This document shows, piece by piece, positions 6,394 through 61,616 of a stretch of DNA of 64,000 bases (position 1 is its first letter; each line of letters begins with the position of its first letter). Made by a program: the position numbers and the translations under genes. The notes under the pieces were generated by a model. That model saw only the letters and a list, made by a program, of their open reading frames with translations. It was not told the origin of the DNA and did not search any database. This stretch comes from Saccharolobus solfataricus P2 (GTDB lineage: Archaea > Thermoproteota > Thermoprotei_A > Sulfolobales > Sulfolobaceae), in NCBI RefSeq assembly GCF_000007005.1, contig NC_002754.1; one strand, 5' to 3'.

Positions 6394-6631
6394 TATCGTT
6401 AAGAATTAGTATTTTAATATCTGATTTAACTTTACTTTAAATGTGGTATATAGACAGTGTATAAGATGGAAAAAGGGGCTAGTGAATACGCAGTGTGAGA
6501 TAGAGGTTCAAATTAGTGATGATGATGAAGTTTACGTTATAAAAAATGGGATAGTTAAAAGAGTTAAAGGAGAAAACGATATCATACCCTATATAAACAC
6601 CATTTCCCCTGCATTTAGAGCATTAGTGTTA

Positions 6632-7708
6632 TACTTCGTCAGACTTTAAAGAGCAAGATTTATATTTCATGAGTAATACTAAATTGTTATGCCGAAATCC
6701 AGAATGCACGGTATAAGGCTCAACAAGAAACAAGAGGAAGAGAGGAGGATTAACGCTGTAAAAGATGTGAGGAACGGGATGAGTATAAAGGACGTTGCCA
6801 AGAAGTATGACGTCTCCATCTTTACCGTGTACAAGTGGTTGAGGAAAGGTGACCTGAGCGCTAAGCCGAGGAAGGGACCCACGAAACTGAAGGACGAGGA
6901 AAAGCTCGTCCGAATCTTAGAAAAGAGCCCAAGAGATTTCGGCTTGAACTACGATTTCTGGACCTTGAAGCTCATAGCGTATATACTTGACAAGGAATTT
7001 GGGATAAAGTACAACCCGAGGAGTTTAAGCCCAGTCCTCAAGAAATTAGGCTTCAAGTACAAGAAAGGAAAGAGAACTTACGTTAGAGACGATAACGCTG
7101 TAGAAAGGTGGGTGAAGGAACAAGGGGAGAAGCTTTTAAAAAAATAAGAGAAGGGTACAAGGTACACATCTTCGATGAGTCGTACGTGTCCTACATAAAC
7201 AAGGGTAAAGGCTGGATGAAGGTCGGAGGAGGGATAAAGGTCAACCCTAAGAGGAAGAGGTTTGCAGTAGTAGGCGGGATAACGATTAGTAAAGAGGGAA
7301 TAACTTTCTCCTATTCGACATACAAGAAGCCCTCGCTGAACTCAAAAGATATTATACTCTACTTGAGGAAGGTAATAAAGGACGAGAAGACCGTGATAGT
7401 GATGGATAATGCTAGAATACACGGTAATGAAGTGAGGGAATTCCTTGAGGAAAATGGGGTGGAGTTTGTTTATCTGCCGCCTTACTCTCCGGATAAGAGT
7501 CCGGCGGAGGGGCCGTGGGCAGTCCTCAAGAAAAGGCTCTACTCGAAGATTTACACGGACTTCGAGACCTTAATGTGGGATGCAACGAGGTTCCTACGCT
7601 CCATATCCAAGAGAGTAAATGACCTTACGTATAGTGTGAAGAGGTGCGGTGAACCTTGGACGTCAATACTGAGTGAAGTTTTCTTGCCCTTTAAAGTCTG
7701 ACGAAGTA
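6632..7708 (+). mobile_element. IS630-family element (ISC1078-type)
   Basis: IR TACTTCGTCAGACTTTAAAG(A/G)GCAAGA at both ends; TA duplication at 6630-31 and 7709-10; 1077 bp. Confidence 0.9.
6689..7701 (+). CDS. IS630 transposase in two overlapping frames (HTH orfA 6689-7147, DDE orfB to 7701), -1 frameshift
   Basis: orfA has HTH/winged-HTH (WTLKLIA); orfB has IFDES, VMDNA and LPPYSPD..P.EG.W. T4-A7 run at 7134-7144 directly before the orfA stop. Confidence 0.85.
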
Positions 7709-8390
7709 TAAGTAAATTGCCCAATAATATGTCAGAAAACCTTTACAGATTGGTGTACAAAACACAACCATTTGGTGAGATAAGGAAAGTCTCAGATAGG
7801 ACCTATTCCATATGGGGTGGACATTATCCAAGTTTCGTTACTTTCCTAAACTTACCTTCAGAAGTAATAAAATATCTACCACCTTCTAGAATGATTGAGA
7901 TAGACCCGCAATACTATGCCCACATAGAACCTTTATATAAATCAATGGAAAAACACTCAGAATGGGCTAACGATACAGCCTATTTCTATGGAAATCAAGT
8001 TTGCATAGCATTAAGGGGGTGTACTTCCTTTGGAGATGAAGCATATAGTGTAAAAGACATTGATCAGAATTTGAACGTTATAAAACTATGGCTATTTCAC
8101 ATTATACTAGGTTCTGGGACAATTGTGATTAATGGTGGTGTAAAAAGTCTGGAAAAGTTCTTAATGCTAAGATATGACAAAGGATTTGAATTTTTGGAAA
8201 GTAAGGAAGAAGCTGGAAAATTGGAAATAGAGATTAATGATAGGAAAATAAAAATAACGTTAAACGATGATGAGCTATTAAGTTTAGACTATACCTCCTC
8301 TCGTTATATTAAGTTTTCATACCCATTAAGCTGGAAGAGTAGATATTCAATTTCAGATTTTGTATCCTCTTTAAAAATGTGGAAGGGAAG

Positions 8391-22582: not shown

Positions 22583-23812
22583 ATGACTCTAGGTATTGCA
22601 TTCGTAGGAAGTGGGTTTTCGGCTAAGTTTCATTTAAGGGGATTAGTGGGAGTTAGAAATGTAGAAGTCAAGGGAGTATATTCAAGAAATCTAAACTCAT
22701 CTAAAGAATTCGCTATGTTATCTGAGCAATTAGGATTAGGGAAACCTAAAGTGTATAGTGATATAAGTAAAATGCTCTCTGATAAGGAGATTAATGCAGT
22801 ATGGTTAACCGTTCCCAATGACGTACATTTAGAATACACAAAGTTAATTGCTGAAGAGGTTTCTCAAGGAAGGTCCAATATACACGGAATAACGATAGAG
22901 AAACCACTGGCAAGAAACGTGAAGGAAGCTAAGGAGATGATTAGATTAGTAGAGAAGGCTGGGCTATTGCATGGATATTTGGAGAATCAAATCTTTATGC
23001 CATCTGTAGTGAGGGCTAGAGAAGCTATTTGGGAGATTGGATCGAGGAATTCTGGAAGGCCATATTTAGCAAGAGCAGCTGAAGAGCACTCTGGTCCTCA
23101 TAATAGCTGGTTTTGGAGACCGACTATTTCCGGTGGAGGGGCATTAATAGATATGACTTGCCATAGTTTAGAGGCAACTAGATTTTTACTTACTGACCCA
23201 GCAAAGACTAAATCCTCACTTAAGCCGAAAACTGTATATGCGGAGACAAAAACGTTGAAGTGGAATAAGAAAGAGTACGCTCAATATTTAAAGGAAAAGT
23301 ATAACGTGGACTTCTTAAAGGAACCGGCTGAGGATTATGCACTAACCATAGTAACTTATGAGGACGATTTAGGTAATTCTGTATTGGCGGAGACTAGAAC
23401 TTCGTGGAACTATGTTGGGCCTGGGCTTAGGTTATCAGTAGAAGTGTTAGGACCAGAATACAGTGTTAATATCAATACTCTACAATCTGAACTTTCAGTG
23501 TTCTTTAGCAGGAACATTAAACTTCCCCAGTCTGAAGCTTTCGTCGAGAAACAAAATGCTGATCAAGGACTTATGCCGATTATACTTGATGAGGCAGTGG
23601 TTTACGGATATCAAGGAGAGGATAGGCATATGGTTGAGTCTTTTATATCCCGTAAGATGCCTTTTGAGAATTGGTATGATGGATTATTAATAGTCCAACT
23701 TATGATGCATGCCTACCTTTCAGCTGAAAATGGGAGGAAGATTAGTTTTGATCCGCAAAAAGTAGAGGACTTCATACCTAAAGTAGCTAGAGGATTATAT
23801 TCTGCCTTTTAA
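22583..23812 (+). CDS. Gfo/Idh/MocA family oxidoreductase
   Basis: GSGFSA, EKPLA and GGGALIDMTCH motifs. Confidence 0.9.
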   Translation: MTLGIAFVGSGFSAKFHLRGLVGVRNVEVKGVYSRNLNSSKEFAMLSEQLGLGKPKVYSDISKMLSDKEINAVWLTVPNDVHLEYTKLIAEEVSQGRSNIHGITIEKPLARNVKEAKEMIRLVEKAGLLHGYLENQIFMPSVVRAREAIWEIGSRNSGRPYLARAAEEHSGPHNSWFWRPTISGGGALIDMTCHSLEATRFLLTDPAKTKSSLKPKTVYAETKTLKWNKKEYAQYLKEKYNVDFLKEPAEDYALTIVTYEDDLGNSVLAETRTSWNYVGPGLRLSVEVLGPEYSVNINTLQSELSVFFSRNIKLPQSEAFVEKQNADQGLMPIILDEAVVYGYQGEDRHMVESFISRKMPFENWYDGLLIVQLMMHAYLSAENGRKISFDPQKVEDFIPKVARGLYSAF

Positions 23813-23896
23813 AAAAATACATTTAATAGCATAACTGATAAGTTTGGAGTTTCTATACTGTAATTACAGAAAATGTACTTTTTACTTAGTATGATG

Positions 23897-23913
23897 AAAG
23901 TAAAGTTTTTAAG
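23897..23913 (+). promoter_or_regulatory. BRE-TATA promoter with no downstream protein-coding ORF
   Basis: AAAGTAAAG-TTTTTAAG, the same pattern as the promoters at 24112 and 27674; predicted start near 23936. Confidence 0.55.
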
Positions 23914-23935
23914 CATAGATTTTCAATATGTATTT

Positions 23936-24010
23936 ATGGGATAGGGCCAGGACAAATGGGGTAGTAAAGGGGGTTATGGGGATTTAACGGGGAGTTGTCC
24001 TGGCCTCCCT
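23936..24010 (+). ncRNA. Candidate structured ncRNA: 11-bp hairpin enclosing four G-tracts
   Basis: GGCCAGGACAA (23945-55) pairs with TTGTCCTGGCC (23995-24005); the loop has G4-N7-G5-N4-G4-N7-G4; the only reading from the start is ATG GGA TAG. Confidence 0.45.
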
Positions 24011-24143
24011 TTCAAGAGATAAGGTTTGAACTCTTTTAAATGGGTTAATATAGTTATCCTTTACTTGTTAAGTTTACCAAGAACTGTATTACGAAAAGAC
24101 TATCGTAATAAAGTTTTTATAAATAAAGAGCATATCTTAACTC

Positions 24144-26315
24144 ATGGCAAGAGAAATAGGAAGACCCGTTAAGAGGATAATAGAAGATCCCTCTTTAATT
24201 ACCGGAAAAGGCAGATTTGTATACGATATTGACTTTAAGGGTACGCTTTACGCAGTATTTATAAGAAGCCAGTATTCACATGCAAAGATAAAGAGTATAA
24301 GATGCCCAGAAGGTGCGTTGTGCTACACCGCTAAGGATTTACCAGAGCTCATCGGATTAGCTAAAGAAGAGGCAATTTACCAAGGGCAACCATTAGCAGT
24401 TGTTTTAGCTGAAGATGAATACAAGGCTAGGGATTTAGCTGAACAAGTGGAAGTGGAATACGAACCATTACCTTCAGTTATTAATGTTGAGGAAGCTTTG
24501 AAAGATGTTAAAAAGGCTAAAAGTGATTTAAGCTCAAATATTGTATTACAAGATAATGTAGAGATAGGAGATGTAAATTCCGCATTTAAAAAAGCTTATA
24601 AGGTAGTTGAAGCCGAGATCATAAACCAAAGAGTAATTCCATCAGCAATGGAACCTAGGGGCGCTGTAGCGTACTTTGATGGAAGAAGACTAACGGTATG
24701 GAGCAGTACACAGAATGTATTTGGATTAAAGGACACTCTTTTACAATTCTTATCTAAGTATGGAGTAAATGATGTGAGGGTAGTCCAGCCTTTTGTCGGA
24801 GGAGCATTTGGTAGCAAAATCTACATTTATCCCGAAGAGGTTATAATATCCTATTTGGCAGTTCTTACTGGGAAGCCTATAAAGTGGTTTAATACTAGGA
24901 CTGAAGAGTTTATGTCGACAAATCACGGAAGGGACATGAGATTAAAGTTTAAGGCTGCCTTTGATAAGGAGGGTAAGTTATTGGGGATAGAAGGAACTTT
25001 GATCATGGATTTAGGTGCTCCAATAATGGAGATTTATGAGGATTCCTTCGGAATGGCTACTACGGCAGCTAGATTATTGGTCGGCAGATATAAGGTTAAT
25101 GCCATAAAGGTTAAGGTATTAGGTATTGCCACTAATAAGACATTTATAGGTCCCTATAGGGGTGCTGGTAGACCTGAGGCTACTTACTTCATAGAGAGAA
25201 TTCTTAACCTTGGAGCTAGAGCTTTAGGTGTTGATCAATTTGAGATTAGAGAAGTTAATATAATTGATGAGGTAAGTCACTATAATACTCCAACTGGAAT
25301 GTATTATGATAGCGGAAAATACAGGGAGGCATTAAAAATCGCTAAACCGTCTTATCATGAGCTATTAAGAAAACGTGACGAGTTAAGGGCTAAGGGTAAG
25401 TTAGCTGGAGTGGGAGTAGCTATTGTATCAGAGATAGCGTCCTTCGGGACAGGTACTGCTAGGGTTCAACTTACACCAAACGGTAGGATTCAAGTAGTGA
25501 GTGGGTTTACTCCGCATGGGCAAGGAGACGCTACTGCATTTGCACAAATAGCAGCTGAGGTATTCGACGTTGATGTAGGTAAAGTTGATGTGTTATGGGG
25601 AGATACGGATTTAATATCTCATGGAGGTTTAACTGGCGGCAGTACAACTTTAACAGTTGGAGGTTCTGCAGTATACGAAGCCTCAATAAGATTAAAAGAG
25701 AAGTTGCTTAGAGTTGTAGGTGAAAAGTTAGGTGTAAGGCCTGAGGAAATAGAGTATAAGAATGGGAAGTTCTACCATAAAAAGGGCGAAATGAGTTTAG
25801 CTGATACCGCTAGGGAAGCATTACGTATGGGAGTATATCCAGAGGAGCAATATTCTTACACAATTAGACCTTATACCTCTCCCTATGGAATACATATGGC
25901 ACTGGTGGAGGTAGATAGGGAGACTGGATTTGTAAAAGTATTGGAGTACAAGGCGTTTGACGATGTGGGAGTTGTTGTAAATCCACTTTTAGCTGAGGGA
26001 CAAGTTCATGGAGGTGCTCTTCAAGGTATTTCCCAAGCACTATATGAGGAAACTGTTTACTCACCAGAGGGTTCATTAATAACTTCTAACTTCTCCGATT
26101 ACGTTATTCCCACTGCTATGGAAGCTGTTAAAGTGGAGTGGAAGTCTCTAGCACTGGCTAAATCAGACACCCCATTAGGGTCTAAGGGAATAGGAGAACT
26201 GCCAACCATTGCATCAACTCCAACAATTCTTCACGCTGTAGAAGACGCCATAGGTAAAAACATCTATACAATGCCAACTAAACCAGAATTAATTTTAAAA
26301 CTTTTAAATAGCTAA
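24144..26315 (+). CDS. cutA: Xanthine dehydrogenase-family molybdopterin-binding large subunit (CutA/CoxL-like aldehyde oxidoreductase)
   Basis: GGAFGSK, YRGAGRPE, TPHGQG, GQVHGG..QG and KGIGE motifs. Confidence 0.9.
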   Translation: MAREIGRPVKRIIEDPSLITGKGRFVYDIDFKGTLYAVFIRSQYSHAKIKSIRCPEGALCYTAKDLPELIGLAKEEAIYQGQPLAVVLAEDEYKARDLAEQVEVEYEPLPSVINVEEALKDVKKAKSDLSSNIVLQDNVEIGDVNSAFKKAYKVVEAEIINQRVIPSAMEPRGAVAYFDGRRLTVWSSTQNVFGLKDTLLQFLSKYGVNDVRVVQPFVGGAFGSKIYIYPEEVIISYLAVLTGKPIKWFNTRTEEFMSTNHGRDMRLKFKAAFDKEGKLLGIEGTLIMDLGAPIMEIYEDSFGMATTAARLLVGRYKVNAIKVKVLGIATNKTFIGPYRGAGRPEATYFIERILNLGARALGVDQFEIREVNIIDEVSHYNTPTGMYYDSGKYREALKIAKPSYHELLRKRDELRAKGKLAGVGVAIVSEIASFGTGTARVQLTPNGRIQVVSGFTPHGQGDATAFAQIAAEVFDVDVGKVDVLWGDTDLISHGGLTGGSTTLTVGGSAVYEASIRLKEKLLRVVGEKLGVRPEEIEYKNGKFYHKKGEMSLADTAREALRMGVYPEEQYSYTIRPYTSPYGIHMALVEVDRETGFVKVLEYKAFDDVGVVVNPLLAEGQVHGGALQGISQALYEETVYSPEGSLITSNFSDYVIPTAMEAVKVEWKSLALAKSDTPLGSKGIGELPTIASTPTILHAVEDAIGKNIYTMPTKPELILKLLNS

Positions 26316-36031: not shown

Positions 36032-37183
36032 TTGAAATATCTAAAAATTTTTGCAATCTTATCTAATCTTGCAAACAACTTGGTAAGTCCGTTCATATCA
36101 TTCGTCTCAGCGTACTTTGGAATGAATTCAGAGGAACTTGCATTAGTTACCTCAGCCACTAACGCAGTTCCTAATATATCTCAATATTTCCTAAACTTTA
36201 TTAAATCTAAAGCTAAATTCTTAATATTTATAGGCACATTAGTTAATGGTCTACTATGGGTCATAAGCGCGTTTATACCTTTTAACTGGATATTCTTAAC
36301 TGTTTATTTTATTATAACAATGAGTATTGGCATAGCCAATTTTGGGTGGAACTTAATAATGGATAGGGTGAGTAGGAATAGTAGGGGTTCCACATTATCA
36401 CTTTACCTTGTTTACGGAACGATAGGCGCATTAGCTGCTACTTTAGTAACAGGTTTTATTACGGAAAGCAACACAGAGTTGATAAGGGAGTTCTTCCTAA
36501 TTTCCGGAATAATACTAGTTGGTTCTGCTAACCTTTCTAGAAAAATAGAGGTGGATACGAAACTTGAAGAAAATCGAGTTAAAAGTGCTTCATTCCAAAT
36601 GAAAAGATTTTTAACTACTATATTCCTCTTCAATCTGGTATTATCATTAGCATGGCCGATTTTCCCGTTAGCGCAAGTGTACAAATTCCACATGAATGAT
36701 GAAAATATAGCAATCTTAAGCGTAGAAACTGGAGTTACAACAATCTTGTTTCAAAGGATTGTTGCTAAATTGACAGATACTAAGAGAAAATTAACGCTTT
36801 TCCTTGGAAGCGCTCTTTATACTATCTATCCTTTATCTTACGCCCTATCTGATTCCATTTATATGATATATATCGTAAATCTAGCCAGTGGATTTACCAA
36901 TGCTGTTGGATCGGTAACTTACATTGCCTATATATTCGATAACTCAGACGACAATACTATAAGGAGAAACTTGGCAGTTTATAACTTGACAGTAGGTTGT
37001 GGAGTGATGACTGGATCAATACTAGGAGGAGTAGCATATAATTACGTTACACAATTTTATAACCCAATATATTCAATAGACCTTATGCTTATCCTATCCT
37101 CTATTCTAAGATTCTCGGTATCTCCCCTATTCTTGACCATAAAAGATACTCCAGTGGTGTTTCACCAATTTTACTCAAAATGA
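36032..37183 (+). CDS. lacTr: MFS sugar transporter upstream of lacS; C-terminus replaced by IS-derived residues
   Basis: About 12 TM segments. The native end would be IKDTRSKLK* (38600-38617); it is now IKDTPVVFHQFYSK*. Confidence 0.8.
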   Translation: MKYLKIFAILSNLANNLVSPFISFVSAYFGMNSEELALVTSATNAVPNISQYFLNFIKSKAKFLIFIGTLVNGLLWVISAFIPFNWIFLTVYFIITMSIGIANFGWNLIMDRVSRNSRGSTLSLYLVYGTIGALAATLVTGFITESNTELIREFFLISGIILVGSANLSRKIEVDTKLEENRVKSASFQMKRFLTTIFLFNLVLSLAWPIFPLAQVYKFHMNDENIAILSVETGVTTILFQRIVAKLTDTKRKLTLFLGSALYTIYPLSYALSDSIYMIYIVNLASGFTNAVGSVTYIAYIFDNSDDNTIRRNLAVYNLTVGCGVMTGSILGGVAYNYVTQFYNPIYSIDLMLILSSILRFSVSPLFLTIKDTPVVFHQFYSK

Positions 37184-38590
37184 TACAATTTCTATGGAAG
37201 AGAAAAATATCAGAGCGGAGTTAGAAAAATCGGCTTATTTCAACACAAGAAGCAAAAAATTTTCATATTTGTTGAAGAAACTAACAGAAAACGAGTTTAT
37301 ATATAAAGAGTAATACCATTTGTCTAGTATTATCAATAGAGGAAAGTAGGTGGAAGGACGAGATGAACAAGAAAAGGTTAAAGCGAGGGACTCCATAACT
37401 CCGTTATGCAAACCATACAAGTATCCAAAACGGAGCTGAAGTCCCTCGCTATAAATTTAGCAACAATCAATATTAACGTTATCTCTCAAGATCTAGACCC
37501 GGAAATAGTGAAAGCAGCGCCATCCTTGCTAACCGGAAACAGAGGAAAATACTACTTGAAGGTAGTAAGACAAGGCGAGAAAGTAATTAGTAAAGGTCAG
37601 AGAACCTTCAAGTTCTACCCAATCTACAGAGAAGTAAAGGGAGAGACCAACGTAGTCGCTGTAGATGAGACCGGATTAACCGTGGGAGAAAAGGAACAAG
37701 AAAAAGCAGAGGGCTTTCTACTCTACAACTGGAAGAGAAAAGGAGTAAAGATGAGATCCTTGGACCTCGTATATCCCTTAAGGTTACCCCTCCTAGTGGA
37801 GGTAGCAGATTTGAGAAGCGACAGTCCATCACAGTTCCTACTCAGGAGCGTGAGGGAAGTAAGCCAATACATGGAAATAGATTACGTTGTAGCTGACGCC
37901 GGATTCTTGAACCTAGGGGTCATCAAGGAAATGCCCGTGAAGACCATTGTGAGAGGAAAGTCGAACTTGAAGGGATTCAAGGAACTATCTAACGTTCCAT
38001 TAGTTGAGAAGAGATACGAGGTTAAGGACAAGGTTTACGTTGCGTATAGGGTCTTGGAATTTGAAGGGCTTTATTATTACGATGTGGTTTACGTTAAGGG
38101 AAAGCCGAGGCACTTCATGTTCGTAACGAACTTCGAGGGAGATCCCTATGAACTGGCTGAACTCTATAGGTTGAGGTGGCAGGTTGAGGAGGGTTTTAAG
38201 GTTAGGAAGGCAAGGATAAGGTATGTTAGGAAGTTGAGTAATAAGATCTTCTTGTTCCTCTATTATACGGTTCTGGATTCTGCGTGGAATCTAGTGAATC
38301 ATCTTCTCTTTAACTTCAAGTCCACGTGTAAGAAGGTTTTGTCCTTCGATTCATTCGTCAAGCTTCTCTAACTTTCTCGGTGTTCAGAGGAGACTATGCA
38401 CGTCGTTTTCACCACGTGAGAAAAATTCAGAATTCTCCTCTTATTATTAGAATTGTACGCTATATTTTTTGCAAATTATTTTAACATGTTATGTTTCATA
38501 ATAATTTTATTGTTTTTCTCTATATCAATCTCTTTTTGAAAGTGCTAATATTATATCTTTCAAATGAAATAATTTGGTGAAACACCACTG
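37152..38590 (+). mobile_element. ISC1439 copy 2
   Basis: Exactly 1439 bp; IR CAGTGGTGTTTCACCAA; perfect 9-bp TSD AAGATACTC (37143-51 and 38591-99). Confidence 0.97.
37406..38371 (+). CDS. ISC1439 transposase (N-terminal variant MQTIQVSK)
   Basis: Same DDE motifs as copies 1 and 3. Confidence 0.95.
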   Translation: MQTIQVSKTELKSLAINLATININVISQDLDPEIVKAAPSLLTGNRGKYYLKVVRQGEKVISKGQRTFKFYPIYREVKGETNVVAVDETGLTVGEKEQEKAEGFLLYNWKRKGVKMRSLDLVYPLRLPLLVEVADLRSDSPSQFLLRSVREVSQYMEIDYVVADAGFLNLGVIKEMPVKTIVRGKSNLKGFKELSNVPLVEKRYEVKDKVYVAYRVLEFEGLYYYDVVYVKGKPRHFMFVTNFEGDPYELAELYRLRWQVEEGFKVRKARIRYVRKLSNKIFLFLYYTVLDSAWNLVNHLLFNFKSTCKKVLSFDSFVKLL

Positions 38591-46099: not shown

Positions 46100-47324
46100 C
46101 GGTAGACCCAAAATCACCTCCATAAAAATAAATCTATAGTATTAATAAGTGTTTCCTCAAGATTAAATATAAAATCCTTTAGATCAGATAAATCGTCTAG
46201 AAAGCAGAGGATGAGCAGCAATCTAAACTCCTCTCTTGTCATGACGTTCTTAAACACGGTGTAAAGCGAGTAGAAGATCATGGCCAGCACGAAGATCAAC
46301 TCGCGGAAGATGAACTTGGTGGAGCTCGTGAAGGGAAGGAAGGCCTTGATGTTCCTGTAAGACGTCTCAATGGGACTCCTAACCTTGTTGTACAACTTCA
46401 GCACTTCCCTCTTGGGTAGGTCGAGGTTGGTCGCCCTCGCGAAGTACACCACGGTCTTCTTCCTCTTCTTAACGATTTCCTTACCATACACCAGGAGTCT
46501 GAACTTGACCTGCTCTTCCTTCTTATGCCTCTTACTGTTTGTCGTGTACTCTCCGTCGAACTCCTCGTAGATCTTCACGTCCCCCACAGGGACTCCTATC
46601 ACGAACTTGAACTGCGATATGAACTTGAGGACTTCCACGGTGTAGAATCCCGCGTCCAAGGTTACGAGCCCCACCTTGAAGCCCATTCCCACAATTTGCT
46701 CCATGAGAAGCTTCACGATCTCATCCTTGCTCATCCCGTTAACTTGGGGAACGAAAGCTAGGAGGAGCACCATATTCTGATACTTCGTGGTCGCGGTAGC
46801 GTAGTTCCACGAGTTCCCCTTGGCTGAACTACCCAGTCCCTCCACCGGCTTACCATACCACGTCTTGGTTGTCCAGTCTATGGAGATGTCGACTTCCTTC
46901 ACTCCCTTGAGTATCTCCATGGAAATCCTCCTCATGGACTCTAATAGCTTCTCGATCACCTCAGTTCCCTGCTCCTCCACGTAGTTCCTCACGGTCTGTG
47001 GTGACACGTTATACCCTTTGGACTTGCTTTCCACGGAGTCGTTCCACAAGCACGCGGAGACCAGAACTCTCGATACCTCCTCAGCCTTTCTTCCCTTGAA
47101 GCTCAACATGGAAAGTAATTTATACCCTACTTGTTGTAGATTATTTTGGTGAGGAAGACCAGGTGTTATCACCTTGTCTTCACCACGTGATAATACCGGC
47201 TTCCTCACCTTAAATCTTTCTTCAATTAATTGCGTTCTTGTCAAAGCTATAAATTCTATTATTTTTCAGAATCTGATATTACCCAACCAAAATTATTTTT
47301 TGTAAAATGATTTTGGGTCTACCG
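46100..47324 (-). mobile_element. ISC1225 (ISH3 family)
   Basis: Exactly 1225 bp; 17-bp perfect IR CGGTAGACCCAAAATCA; 4-bp TSD ATTA. Confidence 0.92.
46114..47244 (-). CDS. ISC1225 DDE transposase
   Basis: ISIDWT, TLDAGF and YNKVRSPIETSY motifs. Confidence 0.92.
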   Translation of the reverse strand: MTRTQLIEERFKVRKPVLSRGEDKVITPGLPHQNNLQQVGYKLLSMLSFKGRKAEEVSRVLVSACLWNDSVESKSKGYNVSPQTVRNYVEEQGTEVIEKLLESMRRISMEILKGVKEVDISIDWTTKTWYGKPVEGLGSSAKGNSWNYATATTKYQNMVLLLAFVPQVNGMSKDEIVKLLMEQIVGMGFKVGLVTLDAGFYTVEVLKFISQFKFVIGVPVGDVKIYEEFDGEYTTNSKRHKKEEQVKFRLLVYGKEIVKKRKKTVVYFARATNLDLPKREVLKLYNKVRSPIETSYRNIKAFLPFTSSTKFIFRELIFVLAMIFYSLYTVFKNVMTREEFRLLLILCFLDDLSDLKDFIFNLEETLINTIDLFLWR

Positions 47325-47410
47325 ATTAAAAGGAGGACAGGGTGGATCATAAATAAGGTCAGGGAAGAGAGGATCCACTTGACGGTCTTAGCGAGGGTCA
47401 CGATTCACGA

Positions 47411-48638
47411 GAGAGTGTCCGGAATGTAAAAAATTGAATTTTTATTGGCAAGAATAAATTGGTTTCTAGTATTATCTTGGATTAAATTGGAGTAACACTT
47501 AAGTTATGGGAGTAGAGGGTAGTACCATGGCAAGAACATTAAGACACATACCAAACCTGATGTACTACCCTCTTCCCCCAATAGAGGATATGCCGTGGAG
47601 GGAAAAATGGTTAACGGAGATCAAGCCCGTGCTGGACACCATGGATTTGGAGAGGGTTCTGGGCGAGGGTGCGCTGGTTTACCTGAAGTTGTTAATCGTC
47701 ATGGTGCTCTACTCTTGCTCCTATAGGGACGCGGTGAAAATGGTCAACGTGAACGTGGTCGTGGCCTGGTTCGTGGGGAGGAAGGTGGGGAAGAGCACGC
47801 TGCACGACTTCGTGGGCAGGTTGTACGGGGTGAGGAAGAAGTTGTTGGAGATTTCCTTCAAGCTTGAGGAGAAGTGCCTACCCAGTTACCTCCCTGCGAG
47901 CGCGCATCTCGTGGACTTCATGGCGTGGCTAGTGGACTCCTTCCTACTGGACTTACCTCCTGGGAAGAGGAGCGTGGAGACCTTTCGGGAGAAGGCGGAG
48001 CTGGAGAGGAGGGAAGGTAACCTGGAGAGGGCCAGGAAGCTGCTCTCCCTGGGGAGAACCAAGAGGAGGTTCGAGGGAAGGTGGACCAAGAAGAGAGGGG
48101 TCTCGCACTACGGGCTCAAGGCAGTGGCCGTGATCTCCGTCTCCCTCTTCGTGAGGTCCATCACGGTGAAGCCAGCCAACTTCTCGGACAAGAGGTTCAA
48201 GTCACCGCTCAAGGGGATTAAGATCGCGGACAGGGGATTCTCTCCCTCCCCGACACAGCTCATAGCGCGGGAGAAGCCCTTCACTACCCTGAGGGCCCAC
48301 GTGGAGTTCTTCGGCACCTACCTGAACGCGTTCTGGAGGCCCTACGGGACCACGACCTGGAGGAACGACGTCTTCCTTCACGTCCTGGGAGTGATCTACA
48401 ACATCAAGATGTTCCTCGCGATCCAACGGAGGACTCCTCCAGGACGTAGAGCCGTTCAGCTCTGAGACGCGCCTCCTCGCGATCAGGCAACGCTATGCGC
48501 GATAGGTAAATCCTCTCGTCTTGATATTTTTCCATTATAAAGTTTTTCTCGGTGATCCAGGTTCTACCCTTCTAGCAATATTAATATTTATCATTCTGTT
48601 TATCTATTCGTTCAGATAATTACATTCCGGACACTCTC
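47411..48638 (+). mobile_element. IS5-like element (ISC1234-type)
   Basis: 19-bp perfect IR GAGAGTGTCCGGAATGTAA; 4-bp TSD ACGA; 1228 bp; much higher GC than the host. Confidence 0.85.
47506..48465 (+). CDS. IS5-like transposase
   Basis: LVDSF, HYGLK, IADRGF and RAHVEFF motifs; intact ORF inside the IRs. Confidence 0.85.
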   Translation: MGVEGSTMARTLRHIPNLMYYPLPPIEDMPWREKWLTEIKPVLDTMDLERVLGEGALVYLKLLIVMVLYSCSYRDAVKMVNVNVVVAWFVGRKVGKSTLHDFVGRLYGVRKKLLEISFKLEEKCLPSYLPASAHLVDFMAWLVDSFLLDLPPGKRSVETFREKAELERREGNLERARKLLSLGRTKRRFEGRWTKKRGVSHYGLKAVAVISVSLFVRSITVKPANFSDKRFKSPLKGIKIADRGFSPSPTQLIAREKPFTTLRAHVEFFGTYLNAFWRPYGTTTWRNDVFLHVLGVIYNIKMFLAIQRRTPPGRRAVQL

Positions 48639-48727
48639 ACGATCTACTGTGGTCTAAAGCGTTAGATTAAAAATCCCGAAATGCTATATAAATTTAGAAA
48701 CCCATTAGACTAATTTGTCCCAGACTC

Positions 48728-52054: not shown

Positions 52055-52285
52055 GTGTATCAAACTACCACAACTACTACCACAACTAGCACGTCCACCA
52101 CCACAAGTACTGTTACTACCACAAGTGTTTCAACTACTACAAGTGTCTCCACGTCTGTAAGTACTACTACAGCTACTGTTACTACTACTGTCAGTTCATC
52201 CAACACTACACTATACGCCATAATAGCTGTTGTAATAATAGTCGTAATAATAGTGGGAGTGATACTAGGCCTTAGAAGAAGATAA
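52055..52285 (+). pseudogene. Orphan Ser/Thr-rich linker plus C-terminal membrane anchor (3' end of a surface or binding protein)
   Basis: Poly-T/S stretch, hydrophobic helix and RRR stop-transfer tail; begins exactly at the IS end. Confidence 0.75.
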
Positions 52286-54954: not shown

Positions 54955-56393
54955 CAGTGGTGTTTCACCAATTTTACTCAAAATGATACAATTTCTATGG
55001 AAGAGAAAAATATCAGAGCGGAGTTAGAAAAATCGGCTTATTTCAACACAAGAAGCAAAAAATTTTCATATTTGTTGAAGAAACTAACAGAAAACGAGTT
55101 TATATATAAAGAGTAATACCATTTGTCTAGTATTATCAATAGAGGAAAGTAGGTGGAAGGACGAGATGAACAAGAAAAGGTTAAAGCGAGGGACTCCATA
55201 ACTCCGTTATGCAAACCATGATATTACCCAAAACGGAGCTGAAGTCCCTCGCTATAACTTTAGCAACAAACAATATTAACGTTATCTCTCAAGATCTAGA
55301 CCCGGAAATAGTGAAAGCAGCACCATCCTTGCTAACCGGAAACAGAGGAAAATACTACTTGAAGGTAGTAAGACGAGGCGAGAAAGTAATTAGTAAAGGT
55401 CAGAGAACCTTCAAGTTCTACCCAATCTACAGAGAAGTAAAGGGAGAGATCAACGTAGTCGCTGTAGATGAGACCGGATTAACCGTGGGAGAAAAGGAAC
55501 AAGAAAAAGCAGAGGGCTTTCTACTCTACAACTGGAAGAGAAAAGGAGTAAAGATGAGATCCTTGGACCTCGTATATCCCTTAAGGTTACCCCTCCTAGT
55601 GGAGGTAGCAGATTTGAGAAGCGACAGTCCATCACAGTTCCTACTCAGGAGCGTGAGGGAAGTAAGCCAATACATGGAAATAGATTACGTTGTAGCTGAC
55701 GCCGGATTCTTGAACCTAGGGGTCATCAAGGAAATGCCCGTGAAGACCATTGTGAGAGGAAAGTCGAACTTGAAGGGATTCAAGGAACTATCTAACGTTC
55801 CATTAGTTGAGAAGAGATACGAGGTTAAGGACAAGGTTTACGTTGCGTATAGGGTCTTGGAATTTGAAGGGCTTTATTATTACGATGTGGTTTACGTTAA
55901 GGGGAAGCCGAGGCACTTCATGTTCGTAACGAACTTCGAGGGAGATCCCTATGAACTGGCTGAACTCTATAGGTTGAGGTGGCAAGTTGAGGAGGGTTTT
56001 AAGGTTAGGAAGGCAAGGATAAGGTATGTTAGGAAGTTGAGTAATAAGATCTTCTTGTTCCTCTATTACACGGTTCTGGATTCTGCGTGGAATCTAGTGA
56101 ATCATCTTCTCTTTAACTTCAAGTCCACGTGTAAGAAGGTTTTGTCCTTCGATTCATTCGTCAAGCTTCTCTAACTTTCTCGGTGTTCAGAGGAGACTAT
56201 GCACGTCGTTTTCACCACGTGAGAAAAATTCAGAATTCTCCTCTTATTATTAGAATTGTACGCTATATTTTTTGCAAATTATTTTAACATGTTATGTTTC
56301 ATAATAATTTTATTGTTTTTCTCTATATCAATCTCTTTTTGAAAGGACTAATATTATATCTTTCAAATGAAATAATTTGGTGAAACACCACTG
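54955..56393 (+). mobile_element. ISC1439 copy 3
   Basis: Exactly 1439 bp; TSD GCGTAAATT on the left versus GCGGTAAATT on the right (one extra G). Confidence 0.96.
55209..56174 (+). CDS. ISC1439 transposase
   Basis: Protein identical to copy 1. Confidence 0.95.
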   Translation: MQTMILPKTELKSLAITLATNNINVISQDLDPEIVKAAPSLLTGNRGKYYLKVVRRGEKVISKGQRTFKFYPIYREVKGEINVVAVDETGLTVGEKEQEKAEGFLLYNWKRKGVKMRSLDLVYPLRLPLLVEVADLRSDSPSQFLLRSVREVSQYMEIDYVVADAGFLNLGVIKEMPVKTIVRGKSNLKGFKELSNVPLVEKRYEVKDKVYVAYRVLEFEGLYYYDVVYVKGKPRHFMFVTNFEGDPYELAELYRLRWQVEEGFKVRKARIRYVRKLSNKIFLFLYYTVLDSAWNLVNHLLFNFKSTCKKVLSFDSFVKLL

Positions 56394-57981: not shown

Positions 57982-59694
57982 TTAAGAACGCAATTTATTT
58001 TTGAATAATTCCTCTACTACTTTAGCTGCCAACTTTGGCTGTCTATCTCTAGTAAATATTCCTTTCCTATTAAGTATTGTTCTGCTTGGATTTTGAGGGG
58101 TCCTAAAGTCGGCGAAGTTCCATATGTGAAAGCCTACAATATAATCTTTCTCCCTCAATGCTTCTATATACTTTCTTATCATTTCACTCTGATATTCCTC
58201 TGACCACATTTGGGGAGGATCGCTATGAAGACCGTATATGGCATCAGCACCAAATTCAGTAATGATTATTGGCTTCTCTGGAAATTTCTTATGGATTTCC
58301 TCCAACTCTATTGCGACAACCTTTACACCACTATCAATATCCCCCCACTCAGTATACCATCCATGGTAATAATTTAAGGAAATTACGTCAACGTATTCCA
58401 ATGCTAGGTCTCGTACTGATCTATGAGAAGCAAAAGTTACTGGTCTGGAAGAGTCCAAACTCTTAAAGAGTTCTACTTCCCTCCTTATGAATTCTGCAAC
58501 CTCACGTATATCGCTTGGAGGTTCATTCATTACACTATACATTATCACAGAAGGCCTATTTTTATGTTGTCTAATCATTTCCTTTATCGTATCCCTTACT
58601 TTTTCGAAGTACTTCACATCGCCGAACATCTTAGCAATCTCCTCTTGGCTCATTACTCTACTGATATTGGAATAACATAAAGGTGGTTCCAGTATGACCA
58701 AAAATCCCATTTCATCAGCTAAATCTAAGTGTTCGTTTGAATAAGGGTAGTGGGAAGTTCTGAAGGAGTTTGCTCCAATTTTTCTCATAAGGTAAAAATC
58801 CCTAACTAATACTGCCCCATAGGTAAATTTGCCTAGTATTGGAAAATCCTCATGCCTTCCAAAGCCCTTCAAGAATATGGGTTTTCCGTTTAAGTATATT
58901 TTGCCATCCTTCACCTCTACATCTCTAAAGCCTATACGTTCATAAACCGAATCCTTCAGATTACCACCAACGTACATTTCCACTATGAGAGTGTATAAGT
59001 AGGGATTATCTGGAGACCAAGGTATAACATTATTTACATCCTTTTCGAATACTTCGTTACTACTCTCCTCATTCAATATTACCCTTCCCTCTTTATCAAC
59101 TAATTTAAACCTTAAGCTGAACCTTTGATTACATTCTGACAAAATTTCTACCTTTAGGTGCCCATAGGATTTAGTATATACCGTTATGTCTTCTACGTGA
59201 CACTCATCTACAAACTCTATGTAAACCGGCCTATGGATTCCCCCATAGTTAAAGAAATCAAATGCTGCATTGTTTAGATCTCTGGCTGGGGGTAAGTTAT
59301 AGGGGGATGGCGTGTTATCTATCTTCACTACTATTTTATTAAATTCATTAACTTTAAGTTTAATAGGAAATTTAAACTGGGTAAATGATCCCTCATGAGT
59401 CCCCCCATATTCTCCGTTAATCCAAAGTTTTGTGATGTATCCAGCCCCCTCAAATACCATCCAAGCCTTCCTATTTCCATTATCGTTGCTAACGAACAAG
59501 TCCTTTTGGTACCACGCTATCCCAGAAAACTGATCCCACTTTGGGTTTTGCTCATTCCAAGAAGCTGGTACGTAAATAATATCTTCAGATTCTAAGCCTT
59601 TATACCACCCATTCTCTTCCCCAGTATTCTCGTTATCTATCTTGAATTTCCAGAAGCCTTGAAGGTCTATTTTAGGTCTATAAAACGATCTCAT
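57982..59694 (-). CDS. gusB: GH2 beta-glucuronidase
   Basis: DFFNYGGIHR, FRTSHYP, MNEP, ITEFGAD and N.KGIFTRDRQPK motifs. Confidence 0.93.
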   Translation of the reverse strand: MRSFYRPKIDLQGFWKFKIDNENTGEENGWYKGLESEDIIYVPASWNEQNPKWDQFSGIAWYQKDLFVSNDNGNRKAWMVFEGAGYITKLWINGEYGGTHEGSFTQFKFPIKLKVNEFNKIVVKIDNTPSPYNLPPARDLNNAAFDFFNYGGIHRPVYIEFVDECHVEDITVYTKSYGHLKVEILSECNQRFSLRFKLVDKEGRVILNEESSNEVFEKDVNNVIPWSPDNPYLYTLIVEMYVGGNLKDSVYERIGFRDVEVKDGKIYLNGKPIFLKGFGRHEDFPILGKFTYGAVLVRDFYLMRKIGANSFRTSHYPYSNEHLDLADEMGFLVILEPPLCYSNISRVMSQEEIAKMFGDVKYFEKVRDTIKEMIRQHKNRPSVIMYSVMNEPPSDIREVAEFIRREVELFKSLDSSRPVTFASHRSVRDLALEYVDVISLNYYHGWYTEWGDIDSGVKVVAIELEEIHKKFPEKPIIITEFGADAIYGLHSDPPQMWSEEYQSEMIRKYIEALREKDYIVGFHIWNFADFRTPQNPSRTILNRKGIFTRDRQPKLAAKVVEELFKNKLRS

Positions 59695-59811: not shown

Positions 59812-61616
59812 TTGGATAAACCAAAGTTAGTATTGAAAGAGTTTGTTCAACACAATGAAGTAGCGCTAGGTCATCATCAGTTTAGATCCCTATATATAGG
59901 CTTTCATCCGATTTCTAGAAACATGATAGTTCATGATGGTCATGCAGCTAAAGTATATTCCAATGGAGAAGTAATATATAGATATGAAAAGTTAGGCAGA
60001 GCGCCCAGAGTTGCAGGTGACACTCACGCAGCATTAACTTGGTCTAAGGATTTATTATTCATAGGAGGATGGCTTAAGGCACCTCCGGGAATGATAGAAG
60101 TATCGCAATATGAGAGGATCTTAAAATATCAAGATATGAGAATGAAGTATAGCCATATACATATGATTTATGATAATGATAAAGTGGAAGTTCTGTGGAG
60201 TAGGAAGTGGGATGATAAGATTCCTCCAAACGGGAGTGTTCTCATGCAGTCATCTTATTCGAAAAGTATTAGTAAAATTAAATCAGACTAGAAATTTTCA
60301 CAATTAGTCGTTTCGATCGAGATGCAGCCAATGAATTAGAACATGAAAACAGCCTCTGAAAAAGCTTATGTGGGAGGATTACGAAATCTTTTTGTAATAG
60401 TACTAGAATGAACCTCGTAAACCCTTGCACATAAGCTTTTCTAAAATAATGTCTTTGTTCAAATTTCTATATCTTAAACGTTAAATGAGCATTTTTCCAT
60501 ACTACTCCAATATTTTTACAAATGTTTTTTGAATTTCATGACTGTTTGAGAACACTCCCCTCCAAACAATTGGTACGGCGAGGTAACTGATCTACTTTAC
60601 GATGATCACGAAGATGCAGTGTACTTCAGTAGAGCTGATGGACATGCAGAATTAGGACTATGGAAAGTAGGTGTATCCACTAGAGATGCAGAATTTCTGG
60701 TGAAGAATCGTACTGTGTATAAGATGGAAATGAAAGACGATAAAATCTACGCCACGATATTTAATCCCATACACACTGACGTTTCCTCAATAATGGTATA
60801 TAATACGCTCAACGGTGAACACAAATTCGTAGAATCCTTCGATTTTCCATTAGAGAACAATAAGAAGATACACATTAGGCGTGTAGGAGGACAAATAGTG
60901 CAAATCCAAAACAAACTAATCGCATTCTATGGTGGGGCACTTATACATATTGACCCACAAAAGGACGTATATAGGTTATATCCATTTCTAGATGTTCGTA
61001 ACCCAGAATCGGAAAGGCCTACTTACATTCCAGGCTTCAGAGCACAAAAAGTTTACATAATGGGTATACCTATTATATCAGCAAATCCTGCAGAGGACTT
61101 ACGGGATATATCATCTAAGACAACATTCGGCTTGCTCCTCAGAATCGACCCAGTAGTACCTCAGATAATCACAGAAAGTGGAGCGATCTTCGGCATGGCA
61201 CATGATGGCGAACATTTATATATCGGCGCGTCTTACGCTAATCACACGGGAGTATACACTTATAGGGCAGGTGATGGCGGAATATTCGCAATACCAGTAA
61301 GTGAACTTTTTAGGAAACCGTGGAATCCAATAAGGATATGGATTCACGATGGTTCGTATTCACCTACTTCAGGGATAGATGGCTGGTTTGGTGGTATTCC
61401 ATTAAAAGGATTTACTGAAAAGAAGTTAAGAGTGTACACTGGAAAATCAACAAAGATGAGAATTGCCGAGTACTCATTGTTCTCCAAGGTTAGAGATGAT
61501 ACTGTTTCGCTAAACACTGGATGGAATATAATAATTTAAGCAATTATTACGATATAGTAGCGTTTAAACTGGACGAGAATATAGATCAAATCCAAGCCGA
61601 AATAATTTTGGAATAA
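59812..61616 (+). pseudogene. DUF2139-like archaeal protein gene interrupted by a MITE, with a further 3' frameshift
   Basis: Excision joins KIPPN|NWYGEVTDLLYDDHEDAVYFSR in frame. A shifted frame after ~61533 continues LSNYYDIVAFKLDENIDQIQAEIILE* to 61616. Family call from memory of the LG..P...GDT....FIGGW.KAP motif. Confidence 0.75.
60232..60559. mobile_element. 328-bp non-autonomous element (MITE)
   Basis: IR GGGAGTGTTCTCA (13 bp perfect, ~28/34 extended); 8-bp TSD CTCCAAAC (60224-31 and 60560-67); no transposase. Confidence 0.9.

Follow-up and report, generated by a model that had tools for sequence, protein, structure and literature searches.

Does a short, G-rich hairpin in the chromosome of Saccharolobus solfataricus P2 (NC_002754.1, assembly GCF_000007005.1) mark the gene of a structured RNA, and if so, do its G-tracts form a G-quadruplex (G4)? 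The element was picked out by a first-pass annotation of a 64,000-nucleotide (nt) stretch of this chromosome, here called the window, where it occupies the intergenic region between a Gfo/Idh/MocA dehydrogenase gene (22583-23812, 409 aa) and a gene annotated as cutA (24144-26315, 723 aa). Of the two neighbours named at that stage, the dehydrogenase is as described, while 'cutA' needs correcting: its product is not the small cation-tolerance protein CutA but the molybdopterin-binding large subunit of a xanthine-dehydrogenase-family enzyme (Pfam Ald_Xan_dh_C/MoCoBD). Comparison with related archaea leaves us almost certain that the structure of this element is real and under selection, as its helix covaries, its G-tracts are invariant, and its promoter is conserved together with its spacing.

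To establish the anatomy of the element, positions 23500-24500 were read base for base. This reading confirmed a perfect 11-bp G+C-rich stem, in which GGCCAGGACAA (23945-23955) is the exact reverse complement of TTGTCCTGGCC (23995-24005). The first-pass annotation had also extended this stem by GGGA/TCCC; the added bases do pair, but the extension is not contiguous with the stem, since a 3-nt bulge, TAG (23942-23944), intervenes on the 5′ side. We refer to the lower, 4-bp helix as P1a and to the upper, 11-bp helix as P1b (Table 1), which together give 15 bp in the window and 14-16 bp in relatives. The 39 nt enclosed by the stem read AT-GGGG-TAGTAAA-GGGGG-TTAT-GGGG-ATTTAAC-GGGG-AG, and the four G-tracts of the proposed pattern GGGG-N7-GGGGG-N4-GGGG-N7-GGGG were found at 23958-61, 23969-73, 23978-81 and 23989-92, with linkers of 7, 4 and 7 nt. 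With four runs of at least three G (4, 5, 4 and 4) and loops within 1-7 nt (7/4/7), the window element satisfies the canonical G4 motif. It also stands out in composition, forming a GC island in AT-rich intergenic DNA, as had been claimed, with a G+C fraction of 0.40-0.44 at the element against 0.24-0.27 in its flanks.

This arrangement of stem and G-tracts is far beyond chance. A single instance of the four-tract pattern is present in the window and none in 100 shuffles, and no other quadruplex motif with runs of three or more G was found on either strand of the whole 64-kb window. A perfect 11-bp inverted repeat with at least seven G/C and a loop of at most 60 nt is expected 0.005 times per window, as estimated from 200 Markov simulations. 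The minimum free energy of the + strand, by comparison with shuffled sequences, is unremarkable (z-score -0.15, against -3.65 for the minus strand), and its plain fold is no better than that of shuffles because G-rich shuffles fold too. Since single-sequence folding is unremarkable, the case for the element is carried by comparative data.

For the comparison, syntenic loci were gathered through both flanking proteins and metagenomes were scanned with a promoter-block pattern. The element is present at the same locus, once each, as ten distinct sequences from at least seven lineages in two genera. Its carriers are the S. solfataricus strains, which share an identical sequence, Sulfolobus sp. 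E5-1-F, two S. islandicus alleles, S. tengchongensis, Sulfolobus sp. A20, three metagenomic lineages (L032, L031/L064 and L068) and Sulfurisphaera ohwakuensis (L070). Conservation of the stem and G-tracts, which the first-pass annotation had asked of related strains, is found in strains, in species and in a second genus, with compensatory changes in the stem. The metagenome scan with the promoter-block pattern returned S. islandicus-type and L031-type copies and two chance matches, with no new variants. No copy was found at the loci of a 69%-identical dehydrogenase homologue (P0010), where the neighbouring genes are different, nor upstream of the S. acidocaldarius orthologue of cutA (72% identity).

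Across these variants the helix is maintained through changes on both strands. In a MAFFT alignment, both-side changes that keep pairing are seen at 5 of the 15 helix pairs, four of which lie among the 11 pairs of P1b, where G-C is exchanged for A-U, C-G for U-A, G-C for A-U and A-U for G-C. None of 500 shuffles matched the observed values, and sliding the 3′ partners by 1-3 columns left 0-1 such pairs in this alignment and 0-2 over all such controls. The same helix was returned by RNAalifold, and the same picture was obtained from a model-fitted alignment of all matches. The lower helix, P1a, is mis-registered by aligners, though it is always present when each variant is folded singly: as GGGA/UCCC in S. 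solfataricus, E5-1-F and S. islandicus, as GGGAAAG/CUUUCCC in S. tengchongensis, as GGAAG/CUUCC in A20 and L032, and as GGGUAG/CUACCC in L064, L068 and S. ohwakuensis. Between P1a and P1b, all ten variants carry the 5′ strand bulge, which reads UAG, UAA, UCG, AG or AA.

Upstream of the helix lies the promoter that had been noticed ahead of A23936, a transcription factor B recognition element and TATA box (BRE/TATA) of sequence GAAAGTAAAGTTTTTAAG at 23896-23913, whose first TATA T is 30-32 nt before A23936/G23938. The spacer between this promoter and the stem base is 21-25 nt long in 10 of 10 variants, though its sequence identity between clades is only 0.59. Identity between clades is 0.81 both in the 45 nt upstream of the promoter and in the BRE/TATA itself, 0.64-0.72 in the stem strands, 1.00 in the G-tracts, ∼0.47 in the linkers and 0.54 in the 40 nt downstream. 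A spacer that varies in sequence while keeping its length would place the transcription start where the helix begins, as expected of a promoter followed by an RNA gene. The first-pass annotation had left the choice between a small RNA and a DNA structural switch; the fixed promoter-to-stem distance favours the small RNA half of that proposal over the DNA half, and we consider an independent transcript from the + strand likely.

The G-tracts themselves are the most constant part of the element. Every variant has exactly four tracts of 4-5 G each (40 of 40 tracts), joined by linkers of 7-11, 4-6 and 7-9 nt, none of them shorter than 4 nt; relatives with an 8-11-nt first loop or a 9-nt third loop fit the extended G4 definition only. 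The linkers share only 43-52% identity between clades, close to what chance would give with A and U alone, and they hold 194 A/U (94%) against 13 G/C, of which 4 are C, over the ten variants. Since the linkers are nearly C-free, the G-tracts have no partner within the module. Judged from these identities, the G-tracts are under stronger selection than the helix. Four kept runs with freely varying connectors are what a quadruplex would predict, runs of at least four G would suit a stack of four layers, as needed at 75-80 °C, and G4 geometry suggests that loops of at least 4 nt would be required to span four tetrads. When ViennaRNA was run with quadruplex terms at 37 °C, the stem with a four-layer G4 was best in every variant, at about -50 versus -26 kcal/mol. 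The helix alone is predicted by the energy model to be stable at 75-85 °C, with -9 to -12 kcal/mol at 75 °C. Taking these sequence patterns together, we lean, though not strongly, towards the tracts forming a G4 instead of acting as four linear motifs.

From these observations we propose that the element constitutes a small RNA gene of its own on the + strand, whose BRE/TATA promoter would direct a start at about 23936-23938, at the foot of the helix. The RNA would end just past the helix or at the next T-run, giving a length of ∼75-100 nt. Its helix, built of the 4 bp of P1a, a 2-3-nt 5′ bulge and the 11 bp of P1b, is predicted by the energy model to be folded at growth temperature, where it would hold together both ends of a module free of C, in which A/U linkers join four GGGG tracts. 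This module would most likely fold into an intramolecular four-layer parallel RNA G-quadruplex. As a guess at function, the helix-clamped quadruplex may serve as a heat-stable working surface for a protein or a small planar ligand, and not for antisense pairing. We give about an even chance to this chain as a whole, that is, to a + strand RNA of ∼75-100 nt in which a bulged helix clamps a four-layer parallel G4 as a recognition surface. Several points speak against it. On the side of the transcript, an AT-rich TATA-like sequence is present beyond the other side of the stem too, the base-pair changes yield no G-U evidence for the strand, and the sole mismatch in S. ohwakuensis, which is C-A on the + strand, would be G-U on the minus strand. 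On the side of the quadruplex, the rough G4 terms of ViennaRNA cease to favour a G4 at 75 °C, the loops, with 18-24 nt in all, are long for a stable G4, and four single-stranded binding motifs would account just as well for the invariant GGGG tracts. The ten variants also form a narrow clade, with few independent events behind the covariation counts.

The rivals to be weighed are, in our order, linear motifs, a leader of the genes for cutA and the MFS transporter, a DNA-level structure, and a relic or small open reading frame (ORF). In the first of these the RNA is the same but its GGGG tracts stay single-stranded at 75-80 °C, where they would act as a tetravalent decoy or sponge for a protein, or as seeds for CCCC or pyrimidine-rich targets. 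Tracts that are invariant while linkers vary, C-poor linkers that leave the tracts free, and an energy model that does not favour the G4 at 75 °C are all in keeping with such an RNA, and multi-motif decoy RNAs are established in bacteria (CsrB/RsmZ). We nonetheless hold it to be unlikely, if the most serious of the four, as there are always four tracts, never three or five, each of at least four G, which is the minimum set for a four-layer quadruplex, and every loop has at least 4 nt. CCCC targets are moreover scarce in an A/T-rich genome, and we know of no archaeal GGGG-binding protein. A different role is offered by a cis-acting leader or attenuator, in which the helix or G4 would sense temperature, K+ or a ligand and set the choice between stop and read-through into cutA and the MFS gene. 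This alternative is kept alive because in every variant the element precedes these genes in the same orientation, even in S. ohwakuensis where the dehydrogenase gene has decayed; short T-runs also follow the stem. Against it, cutA has a conserved TATA box of its own at leaderless spacing and no Shine-Dalgarno sequence before its ATG, the distance from element to cutA ranges from ∼135 nt to ∼1.4 kb and in S. tengchongensis takes in an unrelated ORF, the S. acidocaldarius orthologue does without the element, and no riboswitch family of Rfam 15 matches. A cis leader appears improbable to us, though the element may in some way act directly on cutA, an effect that the first-pass annotation had thought possible.

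Less probable still is an element that works as DNA, either as a hairpin or G4 on the G-rich strand or as an inverted repeat bound by protein, and serves as a barrier to transcription or replication or as an insulator. The inverted repeat and the G-tracts are of course equally present in the DNA, and G-rich non-template strands form G4s and R-loops during transcription. But compensatory changes in both arms indicate pairing within one strand, not a protein half-site, cruciform extrusion needs a negative supercoiling that is largely missing in hyperthermophiles with reverse gyrase, and the conserved promoter with its fixed stem spacing would be left unexplained. The last of the rivals, to which we give very little credence, is that the element is the end of an insertion sequence (IS) or of a miniature inverted-repeat transposable element (MITE), a fragment of a decayed gene, or a gene for a small protein. 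IS copies are numerous in the window, and ORFs have been annotated over the element in one S. islandicus allele (49 aa) and, antisense, in one metagenomic contig (52 aa). A mobile origin is countered by the single copy per locus, with none elsewhere in the 230 kb covered by a covariance model, by the missing target-site duplication (TSD) and by the absence of matches in plasmid, phage and viral collections. A TAG or TAA stop closes the reading frame in the window, E5-1-F and the second S. islandicus allele; the start codon is not conserved, and linker length differences of 1-4 nt break any frame. Among all these, the separate small RNA gene with a helix-clamped quadruplex is the reading that we prefer.

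Table 1. Positions of the element and of neighbouring features in the window
Feature	Position	Strand	Remarks
Palindrome CTGTAATTACAG	23858-23869	+	Perfect, 12 nt; conserved block upstream of the promoter; 45 nt past the dehydrogenase stop codon
T5 run	23879-23883	+	Likely transcription stop of the upstream Gfo/Idh/MocA dehydrogenase gene
BRE/TATA-type promoter GAAAGTAAAGTTTTTAAG	23896-23913	+	Conserved; 81% identity between clades
Predicted transcription start, A23936 or G23938	23936-23938	+	From promoter spacing; helix foot
P1a lower helix, 5′ strand GGGA	23938-23941	+	Partner 24006-24009
5′ bulge UAG	23942-23944	+	Bulge of 2-3 nt here in all ten variants
P1b upper helix, 5′ strand GGCCAGGACAA	23945-23955	+	Partner 23995-24005
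Predicted G-quadruplex module GGGG-UAGUAAA-GGGGG-UUAU-GGGG-AUUUAAC-GGGG	23958-23992	+	Tracts invariant in ten variants, linkers variable
P1b upper helix, 3′ strand TTGTCCTGGCC	23995-24005	+	Partner 23945-23955
P1a lower helix, 3′ strand TCCC	24006-24009	+	Partner 23938-23941
Possible 3′ tail, this strain	24010-24037	+	Ends at first T4 run, 24034-24037
cutA TATA box TTTTTATAAA	24114-24123	+	30 nt before ATG at 24144; outside the element, marks its boundary

The coding potential of the element was considered separately. At the predicted start site the sole + frame ORF is ATG GGA TAG, so that the claim of Met-Gly-stop as the only ORF holds for the window; it does not hold as a conserved feature, the start being AAG in S. 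tengchongensis, GUA in L032 and ACG in S. ohwakuensis. In the S. islandicus allele in which TAG is changed to TCG (L020/L022, 4810-4959), the annotated 49-aa ORF begins inside the promoter, a frame that the second allele and every other species close, and the 52-aa antisense ORF is called over the element on the minus strand of L032 (4852-5010). Neither call is conserved, and both are likely annotation artefacts. A CreT-like mini-ORF or small protein was rejected, as neither start codon nor frame is conserved and there are stops and frame-breaking linker indels.

Established RNA and DNA elements were likewise tried and set aside. A C/D box small RNA (sRNA) does not fit: the AUGAUGA at 23891-97 precedes the predicted start and is replaced in relatives by CAUACCG or AUGACGA, no CTGA was found within 23891-24040, and there is no Rfam match on the element. 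An H/ACA sRNA was rejected as the 3′ flank reads UUUCAAG with no conserved ACA in relatives, and the interior is nearly devoid of C and forms no upper helix. The bulge is not followed by the G-A/A-G pairs of a kink-turn (K-turn), and a bulge-helix-bulge splice site would need a second bulge, which is missing. An origin element with origin recognition box (ORB) and G-string was dismissed, the dyad of the element appearing unrelated to the ORB consensus and the neighbours being annotated as sugar-metabolism genes.

Searches were also made for further copies and for known families. A covariance model (R1) run over 230 kb of Sulfolobaceae DNA returned one copy per locus and one noise match (E = 5.5, window 59389-59421). 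A scan of 185,579 species genomes for the exact stem gave two unrelated bacterial matches only, with a pattern that is over-strict as the stem covaries. In viral contigs, a pattern of stem plus first tract gave 23 matches, all of them phage coding sequence or chance, and a G-tract pattern with A/T linkers gave no match; blastn against plasmids and phages yielded nothing relevant. No Rfam 15 family reached its gathering threshold over the window, none matched the element at E up to 10 in a search of 23700-24250, and the four weak matches beside the element in that search are chance. ARAGORN found no tRNA or tmRNA. A second copy of the stem sequence was not found in the window, whose repeat families are IS copies unrelated to the site. 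The earlier statement that no TSD is present was borne out on reading the sequence, which has no flanking direct repeat at the element, and the single-copy, syntenic element matches no IS end, MITE or decayed gene.

The surroundings of the element help to define its limits. Among the products of the surrounding gene cluster are a GH38 mannosidase, a GH5-like enzyme, an MFS transporter and a second dehydrogenase, and the annotated neighbours of the element are genes of sugar metabolism. The run TTTTT or TTTTTT preceding ACTTAG is kept in all variants, and since oligo-T is a known archaeal termination signal, the run at 23879-23883 is read as the probable end of the dehydrogenase transcript. Upstream of it, the palindrome CTGTAATTACAG is replaced by CTATAATTATAG in all Saccharolobus relatives, a symmetric change in both halves, and has no counterpart in S. 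ohwakuensis; it may be the site of a dimeric regulator or a weak 4-bp terminator hairpin of the dehydrogenase gene. On the other side, the block that includes the cutA TATA box is conserved as far as Sulfurisphaera. The TATA-to-ATG spacing of 30 nt implies, as far as sequence can tell, a separate and leaderless cutA transcript, and no Shine-Dalgarno sequence was found ahead of the cutA ATG on reading the locus. Two further conserved blocks, TTCAAGAGATAAGGTTTGAACTCTTTT (24014-24036) and CTTTACTTGTTAAG...GTATTACGAAA (24050-24081), keep a near-constant distance to cutA in all species, even where an insert lies between the element and these blocks, of 46 nt in A20, 72 nt in L068, ∼240 nt in S. ohwakuensis and ∼1.3 kb in S. 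tengchongensis. Since they stay beside cutA across these insertions, they are assigned to cutA and not to the RNA; they are probably regulatory sites of the cutA upstream region, outside the RNA core. The 3′ tail, whose conserved part (24014-24036) moves with cutA in other species, thus probably lies outside the functional core of the RNA. A tail reaching the T4 run would possibly give an RNA of ∼100 nt, while the core alone would measure ∼72-74 nt.

Two relatives show how far the locus can change around the element. In S. tengchongensis (CP146016.1; L027, 4935-6200) the extra ∼1.3 kb in the gap between element and cutA contains a 190-aa ORF with no Pfam match, and the element and its promoter are kept despite this separation from the conserved upstream block of cutA. 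In Sulfurisphaera ohwakuensis (AP031374.1; L070, 1338-4674) the dehydrogenase gene is a ∼150-nt relic that shares 69% identity with window 23591-23739, while cutA has been broken into ORFs of 138 and 557 aa, a split also seen in an independent read assembly (L071). Between this relic and the split cutA, the promoter, the helix and the four tracts are intact.

Elsewhere in the window, other repeats were noted. A ∼1.44-kb element, presumably an insertion sequence, occurs three times at 98-100% identity (1-1437, 37151-38587 and 54955-56390), with one copy inverted and cut by the window start, and has an internal 11-bp G+C-rich inverted repeat, AGCGAGGGACT. Four pairs of inverted repeats (6629-7711, 46100-47324, 47408-48641 and 60232-60559), with arms of 30-49 nt that are 80-97% complementary and 230-1172 nt apart, resemble the ends of additional IS elements or MITEs. 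At 52097-52188, the tandem-like sequence ACCACCACAAGTACTGTTACTACCAC occurs three times at 18- and 48-nt spacing and is probably a coding repeat rich in Thr and Ser.

The element was also compared with systems of similar build. Mango, Spinach and Corn are aptamers selected in vitro, with two- or three-layer, partly non-parallel quadruplexes and defined ligands. In their published structures they share with the proposed fold an A-form helix that joins the ends, a G4 with A/U-rich connectors atop this helix, and a quadruplex face that serves as a platform; the element differs in being a natural gene with four tracts of at least four G and long linkers, and has no sequence relationship to them. 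Natural RNA G4s, such as those of the telomerase RNA 5′ end, of telomeric repeat-containing RNA (TERRA) and of mRNA untranslated regions (UTRs), have in common with the element a canonical four-tract motif, here in a presumed non-coding transcript. In Archaea, G4 motifs have been reported to be enriched in non-coding RNA (PMC7565180), and G4s were detected in Haloferax and Thermococcus, with Saccharolobus solfataricus named only as a future model (PMC12873603). Such surveys give genome-wide lists of motifs with no defined RNA gene, covarying clamp helix or cross-species conservation, whereas in the element the motif is the conserved core of what looks like a dedicated transcription unit.

The other natural counterparts differ more clearly. 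The C/D box and H/ACA guide RNAs of Sulfolobales resemble the element in their size of ∼60-100 nt, their own promoter and the helix joining their termini, but the element has no D box (CUGA), ACA box, K-turn or guide pocket. The MITEs (SM1-SM4) and IS ends of S. solfataricus are similarly short and intergenic, with terminal inverted repeats in an IS-rich genome, whereas the element is single-copy, sits at an orthologous position in two genera, has compensatory arms and a conserved external promoter, and has no TSD. The Moco RNA motif (RF01055) and the NMT1/xanthine riboswitch are, like the element, structured RNAs upstream of a gene of the molybdopterin or xanthine-dehydrogenase family and a transporter; the element gives no covariance-model match to them, is not contiguous with the ORF, precedes a cutA gene with its own promoter, and has an unrelated fold. 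Our literature search on archaeal G4s and S. solfataricus small RNAs found no description of the locus or of a natural RNA gene so built, although the classic RNomics and transcriptome papers were only partly covered and may list an unnamed transcript. What is already known are G4 motifs in RNAs and artificial helix-clamped G4 aptamers; what would be new is a natural gene of such build. That this gene encodes a helix-clamped four-layer G4 RNA, as a cellular counterpart of the artificial Mango/Spinach-type aptamers, that it acts at 75-80 °C by sensing or binding a metabolite, a planar ligand similar to a cofactor, or a protein dedicated to it, and that it founds a class of structured RNAs new to Archaea, is an idea that we put forward tentatively and regard as rather doubtful for now.

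It is still debated whether cells put RNA G4s to functional use or simply tolerate them, and for hyperthermophiles there is hardly any knowledge on the matter. At this locus evolution singles out the four G-tracts, which are kept while the intervening sequence drifts and the ends are held by a covarying helix. The element is also small and single-copy, and it occurs in genetically tractable hosts (S. islandicus and S. solfataricus). Decoy-type RNAs are rare in Archaea, and the element would be one of them should its tracts turn out to be linear binding motifs. If the helix-clamped quadruplex is true, it would provide a clean natural system for studying how G4s fold and are recognised near 80 °C, as well as a new RNA family for Rfam.

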